From the NCBI GenBank assembly GCA_025558095.1, contig JAIVFI010000029.1, positions 1 to 64,000 of the forward strand: 64,000 bases of DNA, given 5' to 3'. A program made the translations under genes and the position numbers. This document shows, in pieces, positions 35,758 to 64,000 of the stretch (position 1 is the first letter of the stretch; every line of letters begins with the position of its first letter). The notes beneath the pieces are model-generated. The model did not search any database and was not told where the DNA came from. It saw only the letters and a program-made list of their open reading frames with translations. The DNA is from Hyaloraphidium curvatum SAG 235-1. Taxonomy: Eukaryota > Fungi > Monoblepharomycota.

Positions 35758-37221
35758 TCACGTTGGGCAAAAGCTCTCCAACGTGACGAAAACTCCGAGG
35801 GACCGGAACACGGTCCAGAGCGCGACGCCGACGGTCAGCCCCGTGACCAGCATCGTCCTCACCGTGCCGTACGAGACGACGAACCCAAATAGCCTAGCGC
35901 GGTGGTGCGAGATCTCGAGGAAGGACGAGATGGCGCCGATGTGCAGCGCGATTTCGGAGGCCATCTCGCCAGCGCCGGTGCGGAGCTGCAGCGCGCGGAG
36001 CTCGCGCTGCGCGTCGCGGTACACGCCCGCCACGGCATCGATGAGGGCGTTGCGGGAGGCAAGGGTGATGCCGTTGATGGTGAAGTAGTAGGCGGCGTGG
36101 GCGAGGATTGCGAGCTGCCAGGCAATGAGGCATCCGCCGACCGCCTGCCAAAAAGGAGCAGTCAGTACGCGGCCTTTGGCAGGTGAGCATCGAGGAGCAC
36201 GAACCACGGAAAGCACAACAAACAAGATCATGCCCGGCACCTCCACGAGTCCAAACAGCCTCGAAAAGAGAGTGTTTTCCTGTCTGCGCCTGAAGCGGCA
36301 CATGGCCGCAAAGCGGTAGTGCAGCCGCACGTAAAGCCAGGACTTGAGCACCGGAGGAGGCTCTCCGTTGGCGGCGGCAGCGCGAAAGCGGCCCATGCTG
36401 CTCCAGTGTGGTGTACGCGATGTTTCCGTAAAGTAAGGACCGAGACGTCGAGAGAATCACAGAGATTGCAAGTACGCTCGCAACATACAAAGCACTGATA
36501 AGGGCAAGGTACGAGGTGGTCCAGAAAGCTGCACCAAGGGTCACGAGCGGTGTGTAGGTAGCAAAGACGAAAGCACAAGGCAACGCAATCAGGCAGAGTA
36601 CCACATCCAGGATCGAAAACAACCCCGCAGAGTTCTGGACCCACTTGCAGCAGCTCGAGCATGCGCAAGACTCGTCACCGGCTACGTGTGCCGAAAGAGA
36701 CCCCCCCAAGCCCTTCCCGTCGTTGTTCGCATTGCGAAAAAGACGCAGCCATCGGCTCAGAGCACCGGGAGCGCTGAACTCGAGAACCCCGGTCCGGGCA
36801 TAGTCCGTGCCATGGAACGGCCGCGTGACGATGTAGATGGCGACGTTGGAGGCAAAGAAGAAGACGACGGCAGCCATGCCGATCCCGACATCCTTGGCAG
36901 CGAACTGGCTGCCCGCGAGGGGCACAGAGAGCCCGAGCAGCGCGAGCGCCGACGCTCCCGCCACCACGAAAGCGCCGGCGTTGAACCAGCGGCCGAACCA
37001 CCCAGTCGCCGGCAAAGCGAAGCGCAGAGCGGGCCATATGGCAATTTTGCGGCCCCGCCGAGGTCGTGGAGCATGCTGTCGGCCGTCAGCGGGTCCGCGG
37101 CGCGAGCTTCGTTGTCCGGCGTGGCGGGCTCGGCGTCGTCCCCGAAGGCCGGGAGAGACGGGGCGGGCGCGGGGAACAACGCCAACCATTCTGCGGACTG
37201 GAAATCGGCGTCGGCTTCCAT
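35758..37221 (-). pseudogene. 7-TM GRL/DUF3537-like protein, disabled copy A
   Basis: Close paralog of 52022-53526. It has a 1-nt deletion near 37047 and a roughly 40-nt deletion near 36397. Confidence 0.8.
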
Positions 37222-37567
37222 TGCAAAGTGGGATTCCGGTGTTCAGTTGGAAGGGAGAGATGCCATCCCTCATCCCCCGCAACTTGACGACCCCCGGCGG
37301 TCGCGCACCCCCATCTTCTGTCGCTCGAACTAATGGAGACTTCGAGATCTAGCCCTAGGTGCTTGTCCTCGATTGGAACGAGCTCGCTGGCTTTAGATTC
37401 GACTCCGCAAGGGATCGGATCCGATCGTACCGCGGTGGTTGGGGAGGGGTGGCAACGAGAGTCAAGTGGGGGCCGCGAATTGGTCAATTGGACCGTCGTT
37501 TTCCTACAATGAACGGCCGTCGGCCGCGCAACAAACGACCCTGCAGACACACCTCGGCCGTGCCGCG

Positions 37568-38779: not shown

Positions 38780-39970
38780 ATGAGGCCGACCTGGGAAGAC
38801 TTCCGGCTCGGCGACTTCGCGGAGTTTGTCGCGGGCCGGCTCGCCTCCTTCGCCCGCGCAGTCACCGCTGCGCTCGATGCGACGGCCGGCGGGCCCCAGC
38901 TCGTTACTGCGGCCACGAGGAACTCGCTCGCGAGCGCCGCGTTTGCCGCGGAGACCGCCCGGATCGCCGTCGTGGCCCTCCTCGAGCCGGACGACGACCC
39001 GCGCTGCTTCGCCGCCCTCGCGCCGTTCTTCCTGCAGAATTCGACCGGGCTCCCCGCCGACGCCGACACGTCGCCTCTGTTCGGACGGGTGTTTTTGCAG
39101 CTCTTCCCGCGGCTGTACCCCGCGCTGCGGCGCATCGTCTGCGCCTGCTCGCACCCGGCGCGGCTGGAGGCCTGGGGCGTCCGTCCGGAGTCGACGGGCG
39201 GCACCGCAACGGACGTTCTCCCCGCGGCCGATCGCACCGGCGACCACACCCGACTCTTCGGCGCCCCCATGCGCGCCGCGAGCTTCTTCCTCAAGCAGAT
39301 GGCCATCGTCGTGCCCCTCGCGCAGCGCATCGGCGACGACCCGGACCTGGTCGACGCCTGGGCTTCTTCCGCGCTCCTCCTGCCGGCGCTCGCCGCGCTC
39401 CCGGGTGACGCCGGCCACCGGGCCGAGGAGGAAGCCGCACGCGACCTCGGCCCGGCGCTCGCGGGGATCTCGGCCGTCCTCGCGTGCAACTTCCGCCCCT
39501 TCCGCACCGCTTTCGGGGTGGCACGGACCGAGGGCCCCGCCGGCATCCCGACGGTCGTCATCCGGTCGCGAGACGAGGACCTCCCGGCCGTCATCAGGCT
39601 GGCGGCGGTGGCCGGCGCCATCGCCTGCACGGTCTCGCCGACGGGGCCGTACGACGCGTTCCCGTGCGTGGAGAGGATGGCCGGGTTCACAAACAGGCTC
39701 ATGTCGCAGCTGAGGGGGACGTTCAGGGAGGAGCACGGGAAGCGGCCCAGGGAGAACTCGGCCTTCATCCGGGTCCCGGACGCCTGCGACGGGTGCGGCA
39801 GGGACGTGGAGGAAGGGGGGAAGCTGCGCAAGTGCTCGAGGTGCAAGGTGGCGCACTTCTGCTCGGTCGAATGCCAGGTCGCCGCGTGGAAGAGGAAGGA
39901 AGGGGGGCACAGGGCGGATTGCTTCGCCAACGCGCGATCGGATGCGGGGGACCAGCCTCAAGGGGATTGA
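38780..39970 (+). CDS. MYND zinc-finger protein with a different N-terminus
   Basis: CDGC...KCSRCKVAHFCSVECQVAAW...H...C. Confidence 0.85.
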   Translation: MRPTWEDFRLGDFAEFVAGRLASFARAVTAALDATAGGPQLVTAATRNSLASAAFAAETARIAVVALLEPDDDPRCFAALAPFFLQNSTGLPADADTSPLFGRVFLQLFPRLYPALRRIVCACSHPARLEAWGVRPESTGGTATDVLPAADRTGDHTRLFGAPMRAASFFLKQMAIVVPLAQRIGDDPDLVDAWASSALLLPALAALPGDAGHRAEEEAARDLGPALAGISAVLACNFRPFRTAFGVARTEGPAGIPTVVIRSRDEDLPAVIRLAAVAGAIACTVSPTGPYDAFPCVERMAGFTNRLMSQLRGTFREEHGKRPRENSAFIRVPDACDGCGRDVEEGGKLRKCSRCKVAHFCSVECQVAAWKRKEGGHRADCFANARSDAGDQPQGD

Positions 39971-51586: not shown

Positions 51587-52021
51587 CGCGGGAGGCCGGG
51601 GTGGAGTTGTGATTGCGTGTCGGTCGTCTGGAGGAAAGCCGCTCGCCGCTCGAGTGAGCCACTCGACCTAGCCGGGGGACAATTGAAGGTCTCCCAAAGC
51701 ACCAAAGCACGAGAAATGAAGCGTTTGATGCCACATCTAAGCAACCTGGTCTTTCACAGCAGACTCCAACGTTTGCGTAACCCATCTCGAGTAGGACGTC
51801 GACATCCGCACTTCGGTTCTAGGACGCAGCTGTAGGCGCCGGATCGAAGGCCAGAATATTGAAGGCAGCCTAAAGGAGGATATTAGTGACGTGATTGGAA
51901 AGAGCGCGCTGGATGCACGCGAGGGTACAAAGCGGGTAGGGGAGTTCGTGTGTTCCGGCGAGGACGTCATGTGATCTGTCGACCTTTCGCCAACGTCTCC
52001 CGAACGAAATCCCAATTTGCA

Positions 52022-53526
52022 ATGGAAGCCGACGCCGATTTTCAGTCCGCGGAATGGCTGGCACTGTTCCCCGCGCCGGCCCCGTCTCTCCCGGCTTTCG
52101 GGGACGACGCCGCGCCGCCCGCCCCGGACGGCGCGGCGCGCGCCGCGGACCCGTTGACGGCGGACGGCATGCTGCGCGACCTCGGCGGGGCCGCGAGGAT
52201 TGCCGTGTGGCCCGCGCTGCGCGTTGGGTTCCCAGTGACGGGGTGGTTCGGCCGCTGGTTCGTCGTCGCCACGGTCGCCGTTGGAGAAGCCTTGGCGCTC
52301 GCGCTGCTCGGGCTCTCGATCCCGCTCGCGGGTGGCCAGTTCGCCGCCAAGGATATCGGAATCGGCATGGCGGCCGTCGCCTTCCTCTACGCCTCCAACT
52401 TCGGGATCTACACGGTTTCGCGCCCCATCTTTGGCACCGACTTTGCCGGGACAGGGGTCCTGGAGTCCAGCTCTCCCGGCGCCCTGTTCCGGTGGCTGCG
52501 TCTCGTTCGCGCTCCCGCCGACAAAGAGAAGGGATCGACGGGGTCGCTTTCGGCCCACGTGCCCGGCGACGAGGCATGCCCGTGCTGGAGCTGTTGCAAC
52601 TGGGTTCAGAACACCGCGGGTTTCCTTTCGATCCTGGATGCCGCGCTTTCCGTGCTGTCGGTGTCGTGTGCTCTCCTTTTGCCAACCTACACCCCGCTGG
52701 TGTCCTATAGTTCCACGTTCTGGACCACCTACCGTTCCTTCGTCGGTTCTTTGTACGTTGCGAGCGTACTTGCGTTCGACATGATGCTTCCGACGCGGGC
52801 CTTCCTTTACTGAAACATCGCCTACAGCACACTGGAGCAGCGCCTTCACTGCCGCGCTGTCAGTATCGCCATAGAAGACCTGCTGGGCCGGTTCCGAGCC
52901 GCCGCAGCCAACGGAGAGCCTCCTCCGGTGCTCAAGTCCTGGCTTTACGTGCGACTGCACTACCGCTTTGCGGCCATGTGCCGCTTCAGGCGCAGGCAGG
53001 ACTCGCTCCTTATCTCGCGTCTTCTGGGGCTTGTGCAAGTGCCCGGCATGGTCGTGTTTGTCGTTCTTTCCGTGGTTCGTGCTCCCCGACACCGCTTGGC
53101 GAAGATCCCTCACTGATTCGCCCCCTTTGGCAGGCCGTCGGCCGATGCCTAATTGCCTGGCAGCTCGTCTACCTCGCCTACTCCGCCTTCTACTTCACCT
53201 TTAACGGCATCACCCTCGCTTCCCGCAACGCCCTCATCGACGCCGTGGCAGGCGTGTACCGCGACGCGCAGCGCGATCTGCGCGCCCTGCAGCTCCGCAC
53301 CGGCGCGGGCGAGATGGCCTCCGAGATCGCACTGCACATAGGGGCCATCTCGTCCTTCCTCGAGATTTCGCACCACCGTGCGAGGCTTTTCGGGTTCGTC
53401 GTCTCGTACGGCACCGTCAGGACCATGCTGGTCACGGGCTTGACCGTCTGCGTCGCGCTCTGGACCGTGTTCCGGTCCCTCGGGGTTTTCGTAACCCTGG
53501 AGAGCTTTTGCCCCACGGGATTGTGA
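52022..53526 (+). pseudogene. 7-TM GRL/DUF3537-like protein, disabled copy B
   Basis: In-frame TGA at 52811-52813 where copy A has GGA; otherwise colinear. Confidence 0.8.
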
Positions 53527-59196: not shown

Positions 59197-60272
59197 TCAC
59201 ACCTGCGCCATCTGGGTCATCGTCCTGTCCTTGTCCACCACGAACTGCGCCGGCACCGCGTAGTGCCTGATCCCCTTTGGCGGCCTCGGATCCATCGACC
59301 GGACGATCCACGAAAAGAAATCGACGGTGCTGGGCCAGCACCCGCGCTTCCTGCGCTTCATGCTCCGCGTCTCGGGCCTGGTGTCGAAGTCCGCGTGCCG
59401 CTTCGAGAGCCGGGCGATCACGTCGTCGCCGGGAAACGCGGATTCCGGATCCTCGGGGGAGTACTTGGAATTGCGGGTCGGGTTCGTGTGGGCATGCGCC
59501 ACGTCGGCGAGGGAAAAGGCGATCAGGTTCCTCCTGCGGTGGGGCGATCGGTGAGCGGGGGAATGGAGGATGGAAAGCGGCTTGTCGACCATGCCGACCC
59601 TACGACGGGCGGGTACTTTGTCGCAAAGTCGGCCAGAACGTCGACGGGCCATGCGAATAGCAGGGTCTCCTCCGAAGCAGATCGGGCCTCGAAGCCCTCC
59701 GAATAGAACCCCACTGGGATGGAGAACACGTTCACGAGCTTCAGGTCGAACATGTCCCCCGAGCCGAGCACGAAGCGGCTCGTCTCCTCGCGGCGCTCGT
59801 CCGTGGGCCGCCGCCGCCAATCCGTGATCGTGCACTCGACGGCGCCGTCCACGAGGATATAAAGATAACCCTCGGTCGGGAGCTGCTTGTCCCGTTCATA
59901 TACGTGCACCCACTCGCCGCGCCCGAGGATGTCGACAAAGTCGACTCGGCTGATCCCGGTCCGGAGGTTGAAGAAGCGGTACAGGGCTTCGTCGTTGGGC
60001 GCCGCGAAGGGCTTCATTGGCCATTCATCGAGGAACAGCCGAACCAGCGCCCACAGTTGGAGGGCGAGGGCGATGGAGGCCCACACGACAGAGTCGACAG
60101 CCGGGCCTCCGGAAGTGGTGATTTCTGGCCACACGGGGATGCCGGTGCCAAAGTGAACGACGAGGAACATGTTTGCCAGCACGAGGCATACGCGCAGCAG
60201 GAGGAGGTCGGTGAAGACGGCCGACATCACGAAGAAAAAGGACGCAAGTTGCGACCACAGATTCGCAGGCAT
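59197..60272 (-). CDS. Popeye-domain (POPDC)-like membrane protein, 3 TM plus a CNBD-like domain
   Basis: DLLLLRVCL, DSVVW, P...EALYRFF...F, LYILVDG and FAW...L..F...P...WRNLIA follow the POPDC pattern. One intron near 59535-59589. Confidence 0.7.
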
Positions 60273-60784
60273 GTCTGTAAGAAGGTAGATGCGGAGGCGG
60301 AGGGGCGGGCGGAGGGAAGGAAGGGCGGGGCGCGTCAGGAACGCCGCTCTATGCCCACCGGCCAAGGCAGCGTGCGCGGGGCAGCCGTGCACCGGCTCGG
60401 CACAGACACAGAACACTAGCGCCTATATAGAGGCGGAGAAGGAGGAGGGGTTGATCCTTCGGATGGCCAGCACGCCGGCCGGCCGCACAAACCCGCCCGC
60501 TCGCGCCGATAAGATTGCCACTTCGGACCCCGGCACACTCGAAGTTCATTACATGGCCGTATGAGGGCCACGATATCCAGTGGCCGTCCATCCTTTCTGC
60601 GGCGCGGCCAGATGTCACGCGTGGGGCCGACGCACCTGCAGAATCAGTGCCAAGGCGAGCCTCTCATACAAAGTTGGGACATGGTCGTGAAGGTTTTGGA
60701 ATTGAGGGTGGGTTTGAGTGGGACACGAACCGTGGGCACATGGACTTTCTCGGGCTCTCCAAGCATCTGCCGGGGACCACCACC

Positions 60785-61115
60785 ATGGAGCGTCTCTCGG
60801 TCCTCTTTGTTCTGGGCCTCGTGCTCACGGGCGCTCCGTCGGCTTCGGCCGGGACGGGCTGCGTCTTGCTCGTGGAGGATGGGAAACTTGACTGGTATAT
60901 CTCTTTGCAAGTACGTGTCCCTCCGACCCATTCTACCACGGGTTCAAAGAATAGTCGTTCCCGCCGGTCAAGCTGCAGGCAGAGCTCACGAACCTGCTTC
61001 AGCGACGTGCGATGGCCAAGCTCATCGACGACTCCGCGGACGACCCGCAGTGCCAGGCTGCGCTCCGCTCGTGCCCTCGGGCCACGCCATGGCATGGGCC
61101 CGCGCCTCCCCCCAT
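60785..61115 (+). pseudogene. 5' part of a secreted-protein gene interrupted by a retroelement relic
   Basis: Signal peptide MERLSVLFVLGLVL and one gtacgt intron, then the sequence changes to RLE-like. Confidence 0.4.
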
Positions 61116-61119
61116 TCCG

Positions 61120-61980
61120 TGCTCATCACATGCAGGATTCATTGGCTATTCATCGCTGCCGCCCACTGCTTCGGGCTTCCCCACCAGGCGCATCCGCCGC
61201 TGCAACATGCTGCAAGTGCAACCTGACGCTGGGCAACCACGTGGTCGCCCACGCACTCTCTTGCACCTCCGGCGAGTGGCTCCGGATCGGCAGCGCTTAC
61301 GGCCGCCACAACCGCTGCCGCGATGGTCTCGAACCATGATCGAGGAACCGCCCCGCGCCACTCTGTTCACCAAGCTCGAGCCCATCCTCGCTTCGGAGGT
61401 ATCCCACGGGCCCAGAACGCACCACCTGCAACCCCACGCGCTTCTGAACCCGCTAGCAGCCCTTCTTCGGCGGCGCAGAACCGGGCAGACCTCCTGATCG
61501 CCAACTCCGTCACCAACGAGCGCCTCTTCGTCGACGTCTCCATCACGCACCCAAAAAGGTCGATCCCCGAGTGCGGCACAATGCCGCTTCACGCCGCCCG
61601 GGAAGCTCGCCACCGGAAGGTGACGAAGAATTACCAGGATGGATGGCAACTCGCTCTGGTCGGACCCACGCGCCTTGTTCAGGCCATCATGGAGAGCTAC
61701 GGAGCTTTCACCGAGGACGCCGAGCGCCTCATCATTTCTACTCTCCCGGGGCTACACAACCCTCCGCCACATCAAGAAGATCGCGTAAACCAAGTACGCC
61801 GACGAGGACGATATCGATGGCCTGCGCGCACTCTTTACTTGTCGTGCCCGCCAACGCCTTTCGGTGGGCTGCATGAAGGGCAACTCGGCCATCTATACAG
61901 CTTTTAGGGAGAAAAGATACCGATTTCTGGTGGCCGCCGATGCCACCTAATGTACTGTAGACGTTCACGCGCATTAGATC
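61120..61980 (+). mobile_element. Degenerate 3' fragment of a second RLE non-LTR retrotransposon
   Basis: CKC...HALSC...RHN, RADLLI...FVDVSITHP...RKVTKNY...MESYG across shifted frames; lower GC than the flanks. Confidence 0.8.
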
Positions 61981-62017
61981 CGTCAGACTTGAAAGATGGT
62001 TCTGCCTAGCAGCAGTG

Positions 62018-63544
62018 TCAAGTAGAACTCAGCCTGCACGCGAGATCCAGCGTGACGTAAACCCCCGTCGCCCGCAGGATGGTCCACAAGCCCGCCGCAA
62101 CGGTGAAGCCAGCCACCACCACCCCCCGCACGGTCCCGAAGGTCACCGGCACGCCAAAGAACCCCGACTTGAACGCACTCAGATCGACGAACGACAGCAA
62201 GAGATCCCGGTGTGCCTTGACGGCCGCAAGCAGCCGGGGCCGGTCCGGGGGCACCTTTGCGGCGAGGTAGGACAGCGACTGCGCCGCAGACCGATACTGC
62301 GCCGCCACGCGCTCCGGTTGGAGGTTCTTGTAGGCGTTGCCGACGGCTTGGACGCCGAGCACCCACATCGTGACGACCAAGTTGCCGAGGTAAAAGGCGG
62401 GGAAGCAGGAGCCGACACCGATGTTGATGACCGCTCCGAGCACTTGGAAAAAGCAAACCGTGGCGACGATGCGGCGGGTGATCAAGCCGGCTTTGTTGAA
62501 ATTGCGCCAATCCGCCAGCATGCGCCCGTGCAGTCCGACGTACGGTTCGGCTTCCAAAACTGCGAGAGACGCGTCATCCGAGGGACCGCAATCCAGAGCG
62601 CGGGAAAGCCGTTGGTGAAGGCCCTGGAGACTGAGCGCAACAGCCCGATGGCGCAAGCGGAGTTCGATCACGAGAATGCCGGCATACCCCGAAGAGGGGA
62701 AGAAGGAAGCGGTGAAAATGAAGGGAACCCAGATGCAGATGCATAGAGCGCACATCACAGTAGACCACGGGGTGCTCCACACGGATCGCGCAAACGTAAC
62801 TGCGGGCCCGTAGAACGCGGCCACCCCAAAGGCAACGTGTGTGAGCAGCCCGTGAATGACGGTGTAAACAACCATAAAGGTTCTGGCGCGCAAGAGGGCG
62901 TGGCCCAGGCAGTCCGAGCGGCTGCACGGGCACAAATCGTCCGAATCGTCGTGGAAAAGGAACGACTCCGCGTCCGCGTTTCCGTGGGCCTCGAGGTCGG
63001 CCGCCGCTCGTCGCTCGTCCGTGCACAGCTGGAGGTATCGCGCGGCCAGCGCTAGCCAATTACTGTCCACGAGGGGATTCCGACGATCGGCAGGCTTGCC
63101 GGCAGCTCCGGTGTCCTTGGTGGGGCGCAGCCGCCGCCCGTAGAGGCCGAAGCCGAAGATTGCAAGGAACCAAGCCGCTTGAAGCAAAACCAACGCAACC
63201 AGGGCTGCGACCAGGTTGCTGATCCCAAAGACGTCGACCCCGAAGACCCAAGTCAGGGCGAAAAGCGCAAAAAGCGCGATGTCCCCGGTGACACGCGCCC
63301 ACGGCGACCTGTGGATTCGCCGGGCGGCACCCTCCCAGACTATAAGCGTTCCCATCGGTTTCACGTTGTCGAGCTCCTCACAGAGGGCACTCGCAGTGAG
63401 TGGGCGAGCCGCACGACCTGCCGCGGCTGCAGCGACGGCGTCCGCGGGCCAGAGCCAGGCAGGCACGTCGGGCGGCGGCCCCAAAACTGGTGCTGGAAAC
63501 AGGGCGAGCTGGAGGGCTGGCGACAGCCACAGCTGCGCGTCCAT
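62018..63544 (-). CDS. Intact 7-TM protein of the GRL/DUF3537 (7TMIC)-like family
   Basis: 508-aa intronless ORF, no signal peptide, seven hydrophobic segments, C-terminus LLSFVD...GFFGVPVTFGTVRGVVVAGFTVAAGLWTIL. Confidence 0.75.
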   Translation of the reverse strand: MDAQLWLSPALQLALFPAPVLGPPPDVPAWLWPADAVAAAAAGRAARPLTASALCEELDNVKPMGTLIVWEGAARRIHRSPWARVTGDIALFALFALTWVFGVDVFGISNLVAALVALVLLQAAWFLAIFGFGLYGRRLRPTKDTGAAGKPADRRNPLVDSNWLALAARYLQLCTDERRAAADLEAHGNADAESFLFHDDSDDLCPCSRSDCLGHALLRARTFMVVYTVIHGLLTHVAFGVAAFYGPAVTFARSVWSTPWSTVMCALCICIWVPFIFTASFFPSSGYAGILVIELRLRHRAVALSLQGLHQRLSRALDCGPSDDASLAVLEAEPYVGLHGRMLADWRNFNKAGLITRRIVATVCFFQVLGAVINIGVGSCFPAFYLGNLVVTMWVLGVQAVGNAYKNLQPERVAAQYRSAAQSLSYLAAKVPPDRPRLLAAVKAHRDLLLSFVDLSAFKSGFFGVPVTFGTVRGVVVAGFTVAAGLWTILRATGVYVTLDLACRLSST

Positions 63545-64000
63545 GGTTGTGGAGGTGCGCGGGACAGCTTCTCGACGGAAATCGTCCGTCTGCTAACCCG
63601 AGCTCGACGAGGGTTCGCTCGCTTCACTCGCGCCGGGGAGACCCGTACGGCCGGAGGGGCCGCTAAGGCAGTGGCGTCCTGTCCGGCAGAGGAATGATGG
63701 CCGTAGAAGGTTAGCCCTTCTTCAGCGGCGTAGAACCGGGCTAACCGTTTCGCCCCGCCCCCCCTCTCCGCCCACCCCCCTCACGGCGTCGTCAATCATG
63801 GCCAACAACAACGACAACCGCAATGCCCAACTGGTTGGCCTCCCGTTCGCGTGATCTTGTCCGGGGCTTGGTCTTCGGGGTCGCCGCCGCCACCGTCGGG
63901 CTGCCGAGGCACATCGGTACGTCCCGCTCCCCACTCCTGCAAAGTGCCGTCTTTGGGCCCTCGTCGGCCCGGCCCAGTCTGCCGTTGGGATGCACTGTTT

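Follow-up and report, generated by a model that had tools for sequence, protein, structure and literature searches.

We describe here a gene of the fungus Hyaloraphidium curvatum SAG 235-1 that encodes a protein of 508 amino acids, whose predicted fold very probably places it in the seven-transmembrane ion channel (7TMIC) superfamily, together with the odorant receptors (ORs) as well as the gustatory receptors (GRs) of insects. The gene lies on the minus strand at positions 62018-63544 of a stretch of 64,000 nucleotides (hereafter, the window), which corresponds to positions 1 to 64,000 of contig JAIVFI010000029.1 (C29) in assembly GCA_025558095.1 (31.9 Mb, 55 contigs), and it consists of an intronless open reading frame (ORF) running from ATG to stop (508 codons plus stop). 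The complete reading that we propose is that the protein belongs to a large paralog family of H. curvatum, structurally of the 7TMIC type, which forms an array of ligand-gated sensors, and we give it a probability of about 0.5. The evidence comes from computation and concerns the fold, the topology, the conservation pattern, the copy number, the constraint, and the transcription. An earlier annotation made from the letters of the window alone (the sequence-only reading) had suggested a chemoreceptor channel of this kind in a fungus. The host is indeed a fungus, an atypical and non-flagellated monoblepharid (PMC8371127).

The AlphaFold2 model of the protein, which took as input an alignment of 40 paralog sequences, had a mean predicted local distance difference test score (pLDDT) of 91.6 and a predicted template modeling score (pTM) of 0.90, with no segment below 50. 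The Kyte-Doolittle scan (19 residues) identified seven hydrophobic segments (about residues 87-105, 108-133, 223-244, 258-282, 357-376, 381-401, and 465-490), and the model contains seven helices of membrane length, in agreement with what had been noticed from the sequence. Among the transmembrane (TM) helices, TM1 spans residues 81-106, TM2 108-131, TM3 216-250, and TM4 259-279, the last continuing as a helix at 288-319 (the membrane part of TM4 is about 259-282). TM5 is modeled as a 45-residue helix (334-378) and TM6 as a 48-residue helix (383-430), of which only about 357-378 and 383-402 are membrane parts; the cytoplasmic extension of TM4-6 was read from the secondary structure and not from the coordinates. 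The last helix is split, as claimed, into TM7a (436-451) and TM7b (469-492), with a non-helical stretch (452-468) in between, and a second model repeats this split (helices 448-468 and 484-507). The long loops reported after TM4 and TM6 measure about 75 residues (TM4-TM5) and about 65 residues (TM6-TM7b) and are mostly helical extensions in the model; the inner stretch between TM2 and TM3 is long too (82 residues), while the loops on the outside comprise 1, 8, and 4 residues. Coherently with the claimed absence of a signal peptide, the hydropathy scan, which is not a dedicated predictor, found no hydrophobic segment ahead of residue 83.

Then, we evaluated the orientation in the membrane from the distribution of lysine and arginine (K+R). 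Averaged over 40 members, the flanks of the N-terminal, TM2-3, TM4-5, and TM6-7 stretches contain 17.0 of these residues, compared to 2.8 for the TM1-2, TM3-4, and TM5-6 loops plus the tail. Because of this difference, the predicted topology is N-terminus inside and C-terminus outside, which is the orientation of ORs and GRs, the reverse of that of G protein-coupled receptors (GPCRs), and the one that the sequence-only reading had indicated for a check. In the published description, 7TMICs have TM4-6 that are long and form an “anchor” under the membrane, and their TM7 is split (PMC9998090). The predicted protein has both features, together with seven TM helices, an inner N-terminus, inner loops longer than the outer ones, and ORs and GRs as best matches in the Protein Data Bank (PDB).

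The sequence-only reading had also proposed to compare the model with solved structures. Foldseek, run against 350,542 PDB chains, listed insect GRs or ORs as all of its first 13 matches (probability 0.57-0.99, E 0.02-0.2), and ORs and GRs were the top PDB matches by both Foldseek and VIA-align, for two models. Solved examples are AaegOR10 (8V00), AgamOR28 (8V3C), MhOR5 (7LIC/7LID), and Orco (6C70 and 8Z9A) for the ORs, and Gr43a (8JM9/8ZDZ), BmGr9 (8VC1/8VC2), and Gr64a (8JME) for the GRs. The VIA-align rows of ORs and GRs covered 300-349 residues, nearly the whole target, and were collinear, whereas unrelated rows at similar Z covered only 129-265 residues. Essentially all the OR and GR entries of the PDB were recovered, and no other membrane family was recovered in this way. 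On the sequence side, the neighbors by language-model features (at 0.93-0.96) include clusters annotated as 7tm_7, Trehalose_recp, DUF3537, and “GUR-5”. Among the shape matches in the ESM Atlas were “hypothetical protein” clusters of Cnidaria and Echinodermata, with a TM-score of 0.55-0.68 over 358-372 residues. The 7TMIC fold, proposed earlier from the sequence alone, thus stands as a structural prediction, and we consider membership of the superfamily by fold very probable.

Seven hydrophobic segments could also belong to a GPCR-like receptor with an outer N-terminus or to an ALMT/FUSC-type transporter or anion channel, and AtALMT1 appears at rank 16 of the Foldseek matches. This explanation is scarcely credible: the positive-inside count gives an inner N-terminus, no GPCR is present among the listed structural matches, ALMT1 reaches a probability of 0.08 and a TM-score of 0.10-0.12, and the protein has no Pfam family. 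The candidates from the Foldseek list that we rejected were ALMT/FUSC, amino-acid transporters, TMEM16, and ABC transporters (probability ≤ 0.15, TM-score ≤ 0.14).

Some observations weigh against the proposed reading. The Pfam scan of the protein returned no family, even at E = 10, and the 40-member profile gave only chance matches (VMA21, nanofitin; E > 0.5) against all PDB sequences; judged from these searches, the family is an orphan at the level of sequence, with no link to the known 7TMIC families. The sequence of TM7b reads T-V-A-A-G-L-W-T-I from T481, and at most a single one among the GR motif's four positions (T481) fits. Both structural models derive from the same family alignment. 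Lastly, H. curvatum is non-flagellated (PMC8371127), which makes it unlikely that the family serves chemotaxis, the use that one would first expect of such receptors in a chytrid. The resemblance to ORs and GRs could be convergent or a modeling artifact, in which case the proteins would form an unrelated family of seven-helix membrane proteins. We consider this improbable, in view of the length and order of the OR and GR alignments, of the recovery of essentially every OR and GR of the PDB and of no other membrane family, and of the agreement between two methods and two models. Moreover, the sequence-feature search independently returned 7tm_7, Trehalose_recp, and DUF3537, and the topology, the loop pattern, and the split TM7 correspond to the published description of the superfamily (PMC9998090).

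The segments of the protein, all encoded on the minus strand, differ in conservation and in their relation to ORs and GRs. The N-terminal domain (residues 1-80; 63305-63544) is predicted to be cytoplasmic and carries the family motif SPAxxLALFPA ... RPLT, and the protein aligns with its paralogs in this motif from residue 8 onward. It is modeled as four helices (9-15, 34-46, 51-61, and 64-79) with pLDDT > 90; its first ~50 residues fall outside the aligned range of the OR and GR structural matches, and the VIA alignments begin at model residues 48-65. The TM1-TM2 hairpin (residues 81-133; 63146-63304) has a single non-helical residue (107) outside and is variable among paralogs, with a mean pairwise identity of 0.22-0.23.

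Intracellular loop 1 (82 amino acids, residues 134-215; 62900-63145) contains a helix (165-187) and the H198/C205/C207/C212 cluster (nt 62909-62953), with the pattern H-x6-CxCx4C and the cysteines within CPCSRSDC. The cysteine cluster between TM2 and TM3 had already been pointed out, and indeed C205, C207, and C212 are invariant in the alignments of 40 and of 43 members, with H198 at least 90% conserved. On the basis of the K+R distribution, the cluster is placed on the cytoplasmic side, where it may represent a metal site.

The next segment (residues 216-282; 62699-62899) includes TM3, the short outer loop 2 (8 amino acids), and TM4, as defined by hydropathy, model, and topology. It is followed by the cytoplasmic extension of TM4, a loop, and the cytoplasmic half of the long TM5 (residues 283-356; 62477-62698), with the motifs ELRLRHRAV (R296 and R300 conserved) and EPYVxLH ... 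W346 and the model helices 288-319 and 334-378; in the model, this segment corresponds to a portion of the OR “anchor” domain. The membrane parts of TM5 and TM6 (residues 357-402; 62339-62476) are joined by a 4-residue outer loop with the invariant C380 (GSCxPA). The next part (residues 403-451; 62192-62338) comprises the cytoplasmic extension of TM6, with the invariant N407, and TM7a, from model helices 383-430 and 436-451.

The non-helical linker (FFGVPVTFGT) and TM7b (residues 452-492; 62069-62191) follow in the model, and their motif is present in all three copies of the family in the window. In ORs and GRs, TM7b lines the pore. The sequence-only reading had described this end of the protein as conserved in the three copies, which is correct, but with a spacer of five residues between SF[LV][ED] and [LF]FG: this pattern matches none of the three copies, while the version with seven residues matches all of them. 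The outer C-terminal tail (residues 493-508 plus stop; 62018-62068) contains C503, at least 90% conserved. The model has strands at 380-382 and 496-498, which form a beta-bridge between the tail and the C380 loop, and a C380-C503 disulfide is possible on this basis.

The comparison among paralogs showed that the mean pairwise identity is highest in the outer loop between TM5 and TM6 (EL3; 0.58), followed by 0.44 in TM7b, 0.38 in the tail, 0.35 in the linker between TM7a and TM7b, and 0.33 in the cytoplasmic part of TM6. The lowest values (0.19-0.23) were found in the membrane parts of TM1-TM6, and TM7b is the most conserved helix. ORs and GRs have a like pattern: their pore helix and anchor are conserved, and their pocket helices vary. 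Because of this resemblance, the conservation pattern supports, without proving it, a model of a channel with a variable pocket.

Of the solved relatives, BmGr9 and Gr43a function as ligand-gated cation channels made of four identical subunits (PMC11100771). By analogy, we infer the oligomerization, conduction, ligands, and cellular location of the H. curvatum proteins as follows. The proteins would assemble as tetramers via the conserved cytoplasmic “anchor” helices, as in the solved relatives, and the conserved TM7b would line a cation pore at the center. In the membrane, the fast-diverging parts of TM1-TM6 would form a ligand pocket that differs in each paralog, so that the several hundred genes together would let a planktonic, non-motile cell sense dissolved compounds through an array of ligand-gated sensors. 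The family would have added to this common plan an N-terminal cytoplasmic domain, an intracellular cluster that perhaps binds metal, and the C380/C503 pair, perhaps a disulfide. That the protein works as a ligand-gated sensory channel is a tentative conclusion, with a little less than an even chance of being correct. The more ambitious version, in which the family is the largest known non-animal 7TMIC repertoire, with hundreds of intact expressed paralogs that constitute a combinatorial array of ligand-gated channels, and in which the H/C/C/C loop adds metal- or redox-dependent control, we regard as unlikely.

All the evidence on the fold fits equally well a protein that has the 7TMIC fold by homology and is not an external chemosensor: it could serve in self/non-self recognition or in the recognition of parasites or viruses, it could be an organellar or vacuolar channel, or it could be a receptor or scaffold that does not conduct. 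The host is non-motile (PMC8371127), and the conserved cytoplasmic N-terminal domain and the H/C/C/C loop are not known from ORs and GRs. Furthermore, recognition or immune-type repertoires are typically large, diverse, and partly pseudogenized. We know of no function for PHTF or for most of the non-insect 7TMICs. Against this explanation, the combination of variable TM1-6 with a conserved TM7b and anchor is the pattern of the ligand-gated ORs and GRs; we judge it plausible, if on the doubtful side.

The expansion of the family, which the sequence-only reading had proposed, is evident in the genome of H. curvatum, where hundreds of candidate loci were found. A tblastn-type search with the protein gave 86 scored matches of 660 first-look candidates, and the family profile gave 883 first-look candidates. 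All 84 scored profile loci had E ≤ 1e-107, and nearly all of them cover profile positions about 6-507; 78 of the 84 top loci are open, with no in-frame stop. Since even the lowest-ranking of the scored matches reaches 1e-107, these searches indicate that the true number of family members is much larger than 84. The finding of 84 loci at E ≤ 1e-107 in one genome also shows that the pattern of tail, cluster, and hydrophobic segments is not due to chance. Among 1.84 billion representative proteins (50% clusters), the HMMER pass identified 452 matches at E ≤ 1e-3, 405 at E ≤ 1e-10, and 284 at E ≤ 1e-30, and 9 out of 10 representatives in an unselected sample were H. curvatum proteins. The identical 508-amino-acid sequence is present in a public protein collection, and its nearest named relatives are annotated as “hypothetical protein DFJ74DRAFT_...” of H. 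curvatum. The word-indexed search of proteins, whether queried with the single sequence or with the alignment, recovered nothing beyond the protein and two paralogs of H. curvatum, a result limited by the sensitivity of the word index.

Members outside H. curvatum were found by choosing matches with a composition typical of lower G+C. Several of them come from a single Logan assembly, SRR26194948, where they sit on long contigs. Of these contigs, the one examined has a G+C content of 55% and matches no DNA of the H. curvatum genome, and its cysteine-synthase-like gene is 74% identical to that of H. curvatum; on another contig, a gene for a fungal-type TRPY1/YVC1 channel is located near a family member. 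One of the members in this assembly is split over two frames. SRR26194948 represents a second, fungus-like organism that carries several members. One further member was found on a 1.4-kb contig of the JGI metagenome 3300043314. On the basis of these two sources, the family extends past one genome, with its known bulk in H. curvatum.

The closest intact paralog pairs sampled (52-78% amino-acid identity) had a ratio of nonsynonymous to synonymous divergence (dN/dS) of 0.20-0.38, with dS of 0.5-1.6. The dN/dS values indicate a selection that is purifying but fairly relaxed, in a sample without very recent duplicates. The window contains two other copies of the family, both disrupted. The first (35761-37242, minus strand) was detected by tblastn; it is split over two reading frames, with pieces matching the family hidden Markov model (HMM) in frames -1, -0, and -1, and is an apparent pseudogene or is otherwise interrupted. 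The other (51890-53523, plus strand) has pieces in frame +1, again in +1 after a stop at about 52811, and then in +0. The last 650 nt of these two copies are 87% identical. Among the 84 best loci of the genome, six contain a stop, and the disrupted copies fit a birth-and-death evolution. The claim of fast turnover therefore has partial support, from two of the three copies in the window and from the six stop-containing loci among the 84, but the sampled intact pairs are old (dS ≥ 0.5) and under constraint.

Some members occur in close pairs, in tandem or inverted, 0.3-2 kb apart (C6:171199-174534, C9:734008-739157, C39:391481-395102, and C14:38285-41822). These pairs suggest local duplication as one route of expansion.

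The gene at 62018-63544 is itself bracketed by two copies of a dispersed repeat of ~450 nt. One copy is downstream of the gene (61503-61956, plus strand) and the second is upstream of it, just past the end of the window (C29:64199-64636). The two copies are in direct orientation and 94% alike, and they resemble the ~12 other occurrences in the genome less closely (at most 89%); a further, partial copy (C25:557798-558021) lies about 350 nt upstream of a family paralog. This bracketing could reflect a local duplication of the gene or its movement by an element. It also raises the question of whether the copy number mainly derives from selfish spread, with mobile elements carrying or copying a gene that lacks introns. 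Coherently with such a process, the coding sequences of the family are intronless, though the H. curvatum genome has introns. However, the repeat was not found in the flanks of 48 other family loci examined, and no transposase or reverse-transcriptase domain is present within the unit. The age of the paralogs (dS ≥ 0.5), their purifying selection, and the 78 open loci among the top 84 also speak against selfish spread, which we consider very improbable as the main cause of the copy number.

We found one public sequencing run that holds the stretch. A contig of this run over the neighboring gene skips positions 59533-59588 (56 nt), which have GT..AG ends on the minus strand; the skipped segment is a short spliced intron of that gene, and the run is therefore RNA. 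The 62018-63544 gene is transcribed: an unspliced RNA contig of 2,312 nt, with no strand assigned, covers 61879-64000 and continues about 190 nt beyond the window, including the whole ORF. The ends of this contig coincide with the flanking repeats and are for this reason assembly breaks and not transcript ends. The intergenic positions 60524-61443 are mostly empty in the RNA run.

The comparison with known 7TMICs shows what is new in this family. Compared to insect ORs and Orco (7tm_6), the H. curvatum family has no Pfam match and no sequence similarity, with 8-11% identity in the structural alignments, and it shows no sign of a co-receptor arrangement. In contrast to both ORs and GRs, it has about 50 extra conserved residues at the N-terminus, an 82-residue intracellular loop 1 (IL1) with the H-x6-C-x-C-x4-C cluster, a conserved pair of outer cysteines (the invariant C380 and C503), and a very short outer loop 2 of 8 residues. 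The outer loop 2 of ORs is much longer. From insect GRs (7tm_7, Trehalose_recp), the protein also differs in that both the TYhhhhhQF motif and an HMM match are missing, with loops and N-terminus differing as for ORs. Because of the missing motif and of the lack of any Pfam match at E = 10, we did not file it as a Gr.

The gustatory receptor-like proteins (GRLs) of animals and protists and the plant DUF3537 proteins also belong to the 7TMIC superfamily. With the GRLs of chytrids and protists and with the DUF3537 proteins, the family shares a length of about 350-500 amino acids, seven TM helices, an inner N-terminus, inner loops that are long, and a TM7 motif that is weak or missing. The scan returned no Pfam match to 7tm_6 or DUF3537 (PF12056), and DUF3537 clusters appear only as language-model neighbors. 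Published counts are a single GRL for each of the chytrids Spizellomyces punctatus and S. palustris, no more than six for any protist species, and 4-12 DUF3537 genes for a plant (PMC7746228). The contrast in copy number, based on published descriptions, is thus between hundreds of members in one fungus and ones to a dozen in the other genomes. The broad screen of Himmel et al. (2023, bioRxiv 10.1101/2023.08.30.555482), which applies a Class A / Class B scheme and whose “Fungi” are chytrids and blastoclads, did not recover the earlier chytrid GRLs.

The sequence-only reading had called this an undescribed system. The superfamily was already known, including its presence in early-diverging fungi as single GRLs in chytrids (PMC7746228); the family and its size, instead, appear undescribed, and what appears to be new is a sequence-orphan family that adopts a known fold, carries additions of its own, and is present in exceptionally many copies. 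In the literature searched, Hyaloraphidium is not mentioned together with these receptors, which does not prove that nobody noted it, and among the titles and abstracts of post-2024 papers that use the term 7TMIC, none is about fungi.

According to this literature, the H. curvatum family far exceeds the one to a dozen 7TMICs per genome reported for non-animals, and a receptor-type expansion of the fold is not confined to animals. The family offers hundreds of natural variants with intronless coding sequence, in a culturable fungus with a small genome (32 Mb), which are usable for expression, ligand screening, and structure determination. To our knowledge, most 7TMICs outside insects have no assigned function. 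If the members are ligand-gated, the ancestral function of the superfamily could be tested in a microbe; if they form a chemosensory array, large expansions of this fold arose independently of animals and nervous systems. The family also raises the question of the role of so many OR/GR-like proteins in a planktonic cell that does not swim.

In the 5' flank of the 62018-63544 gene, the Rfam scan found nothing but a far sub-threshold match to RNase P. With one mismatch, two very deep 31-nt contigs of the RNA run (depth 4600 and 380) match positions 63590-63617, which lie 46-73 nt upstream of the ATG. This segment has no Rfam family, its 28-mer was not found at the other loci compared, and an abundant RNA that matches here by chance probably accounts for the signal. 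Elsewhere in the window, the broken family copy at 35761-37242 adjoins an ORF (38780-39970, plus strand) with a MYND zinc finger (E 2.5e-8); the large ORFs that neighbor this ORF gave no Pfam match. No F-box or LRR domain was identified by Pfam in the ORFs beside the two broken copies, and the 62018-63544 gene has no F-box/LRR neighbor either, which speaks against the alternative of a recognition role for this copy. The next recognized gene upstream of the 62018-63544 gene, on the same minus strand and beyond the window, encodes a chitin synthase (C29 about 65830-68587; Chitin_synth_2, E 7e-93), with Cyt-b5 and CHS4 domains upstream. This chitin synthase seemingly consists of two ORFs, with an intron or a frame change between them.

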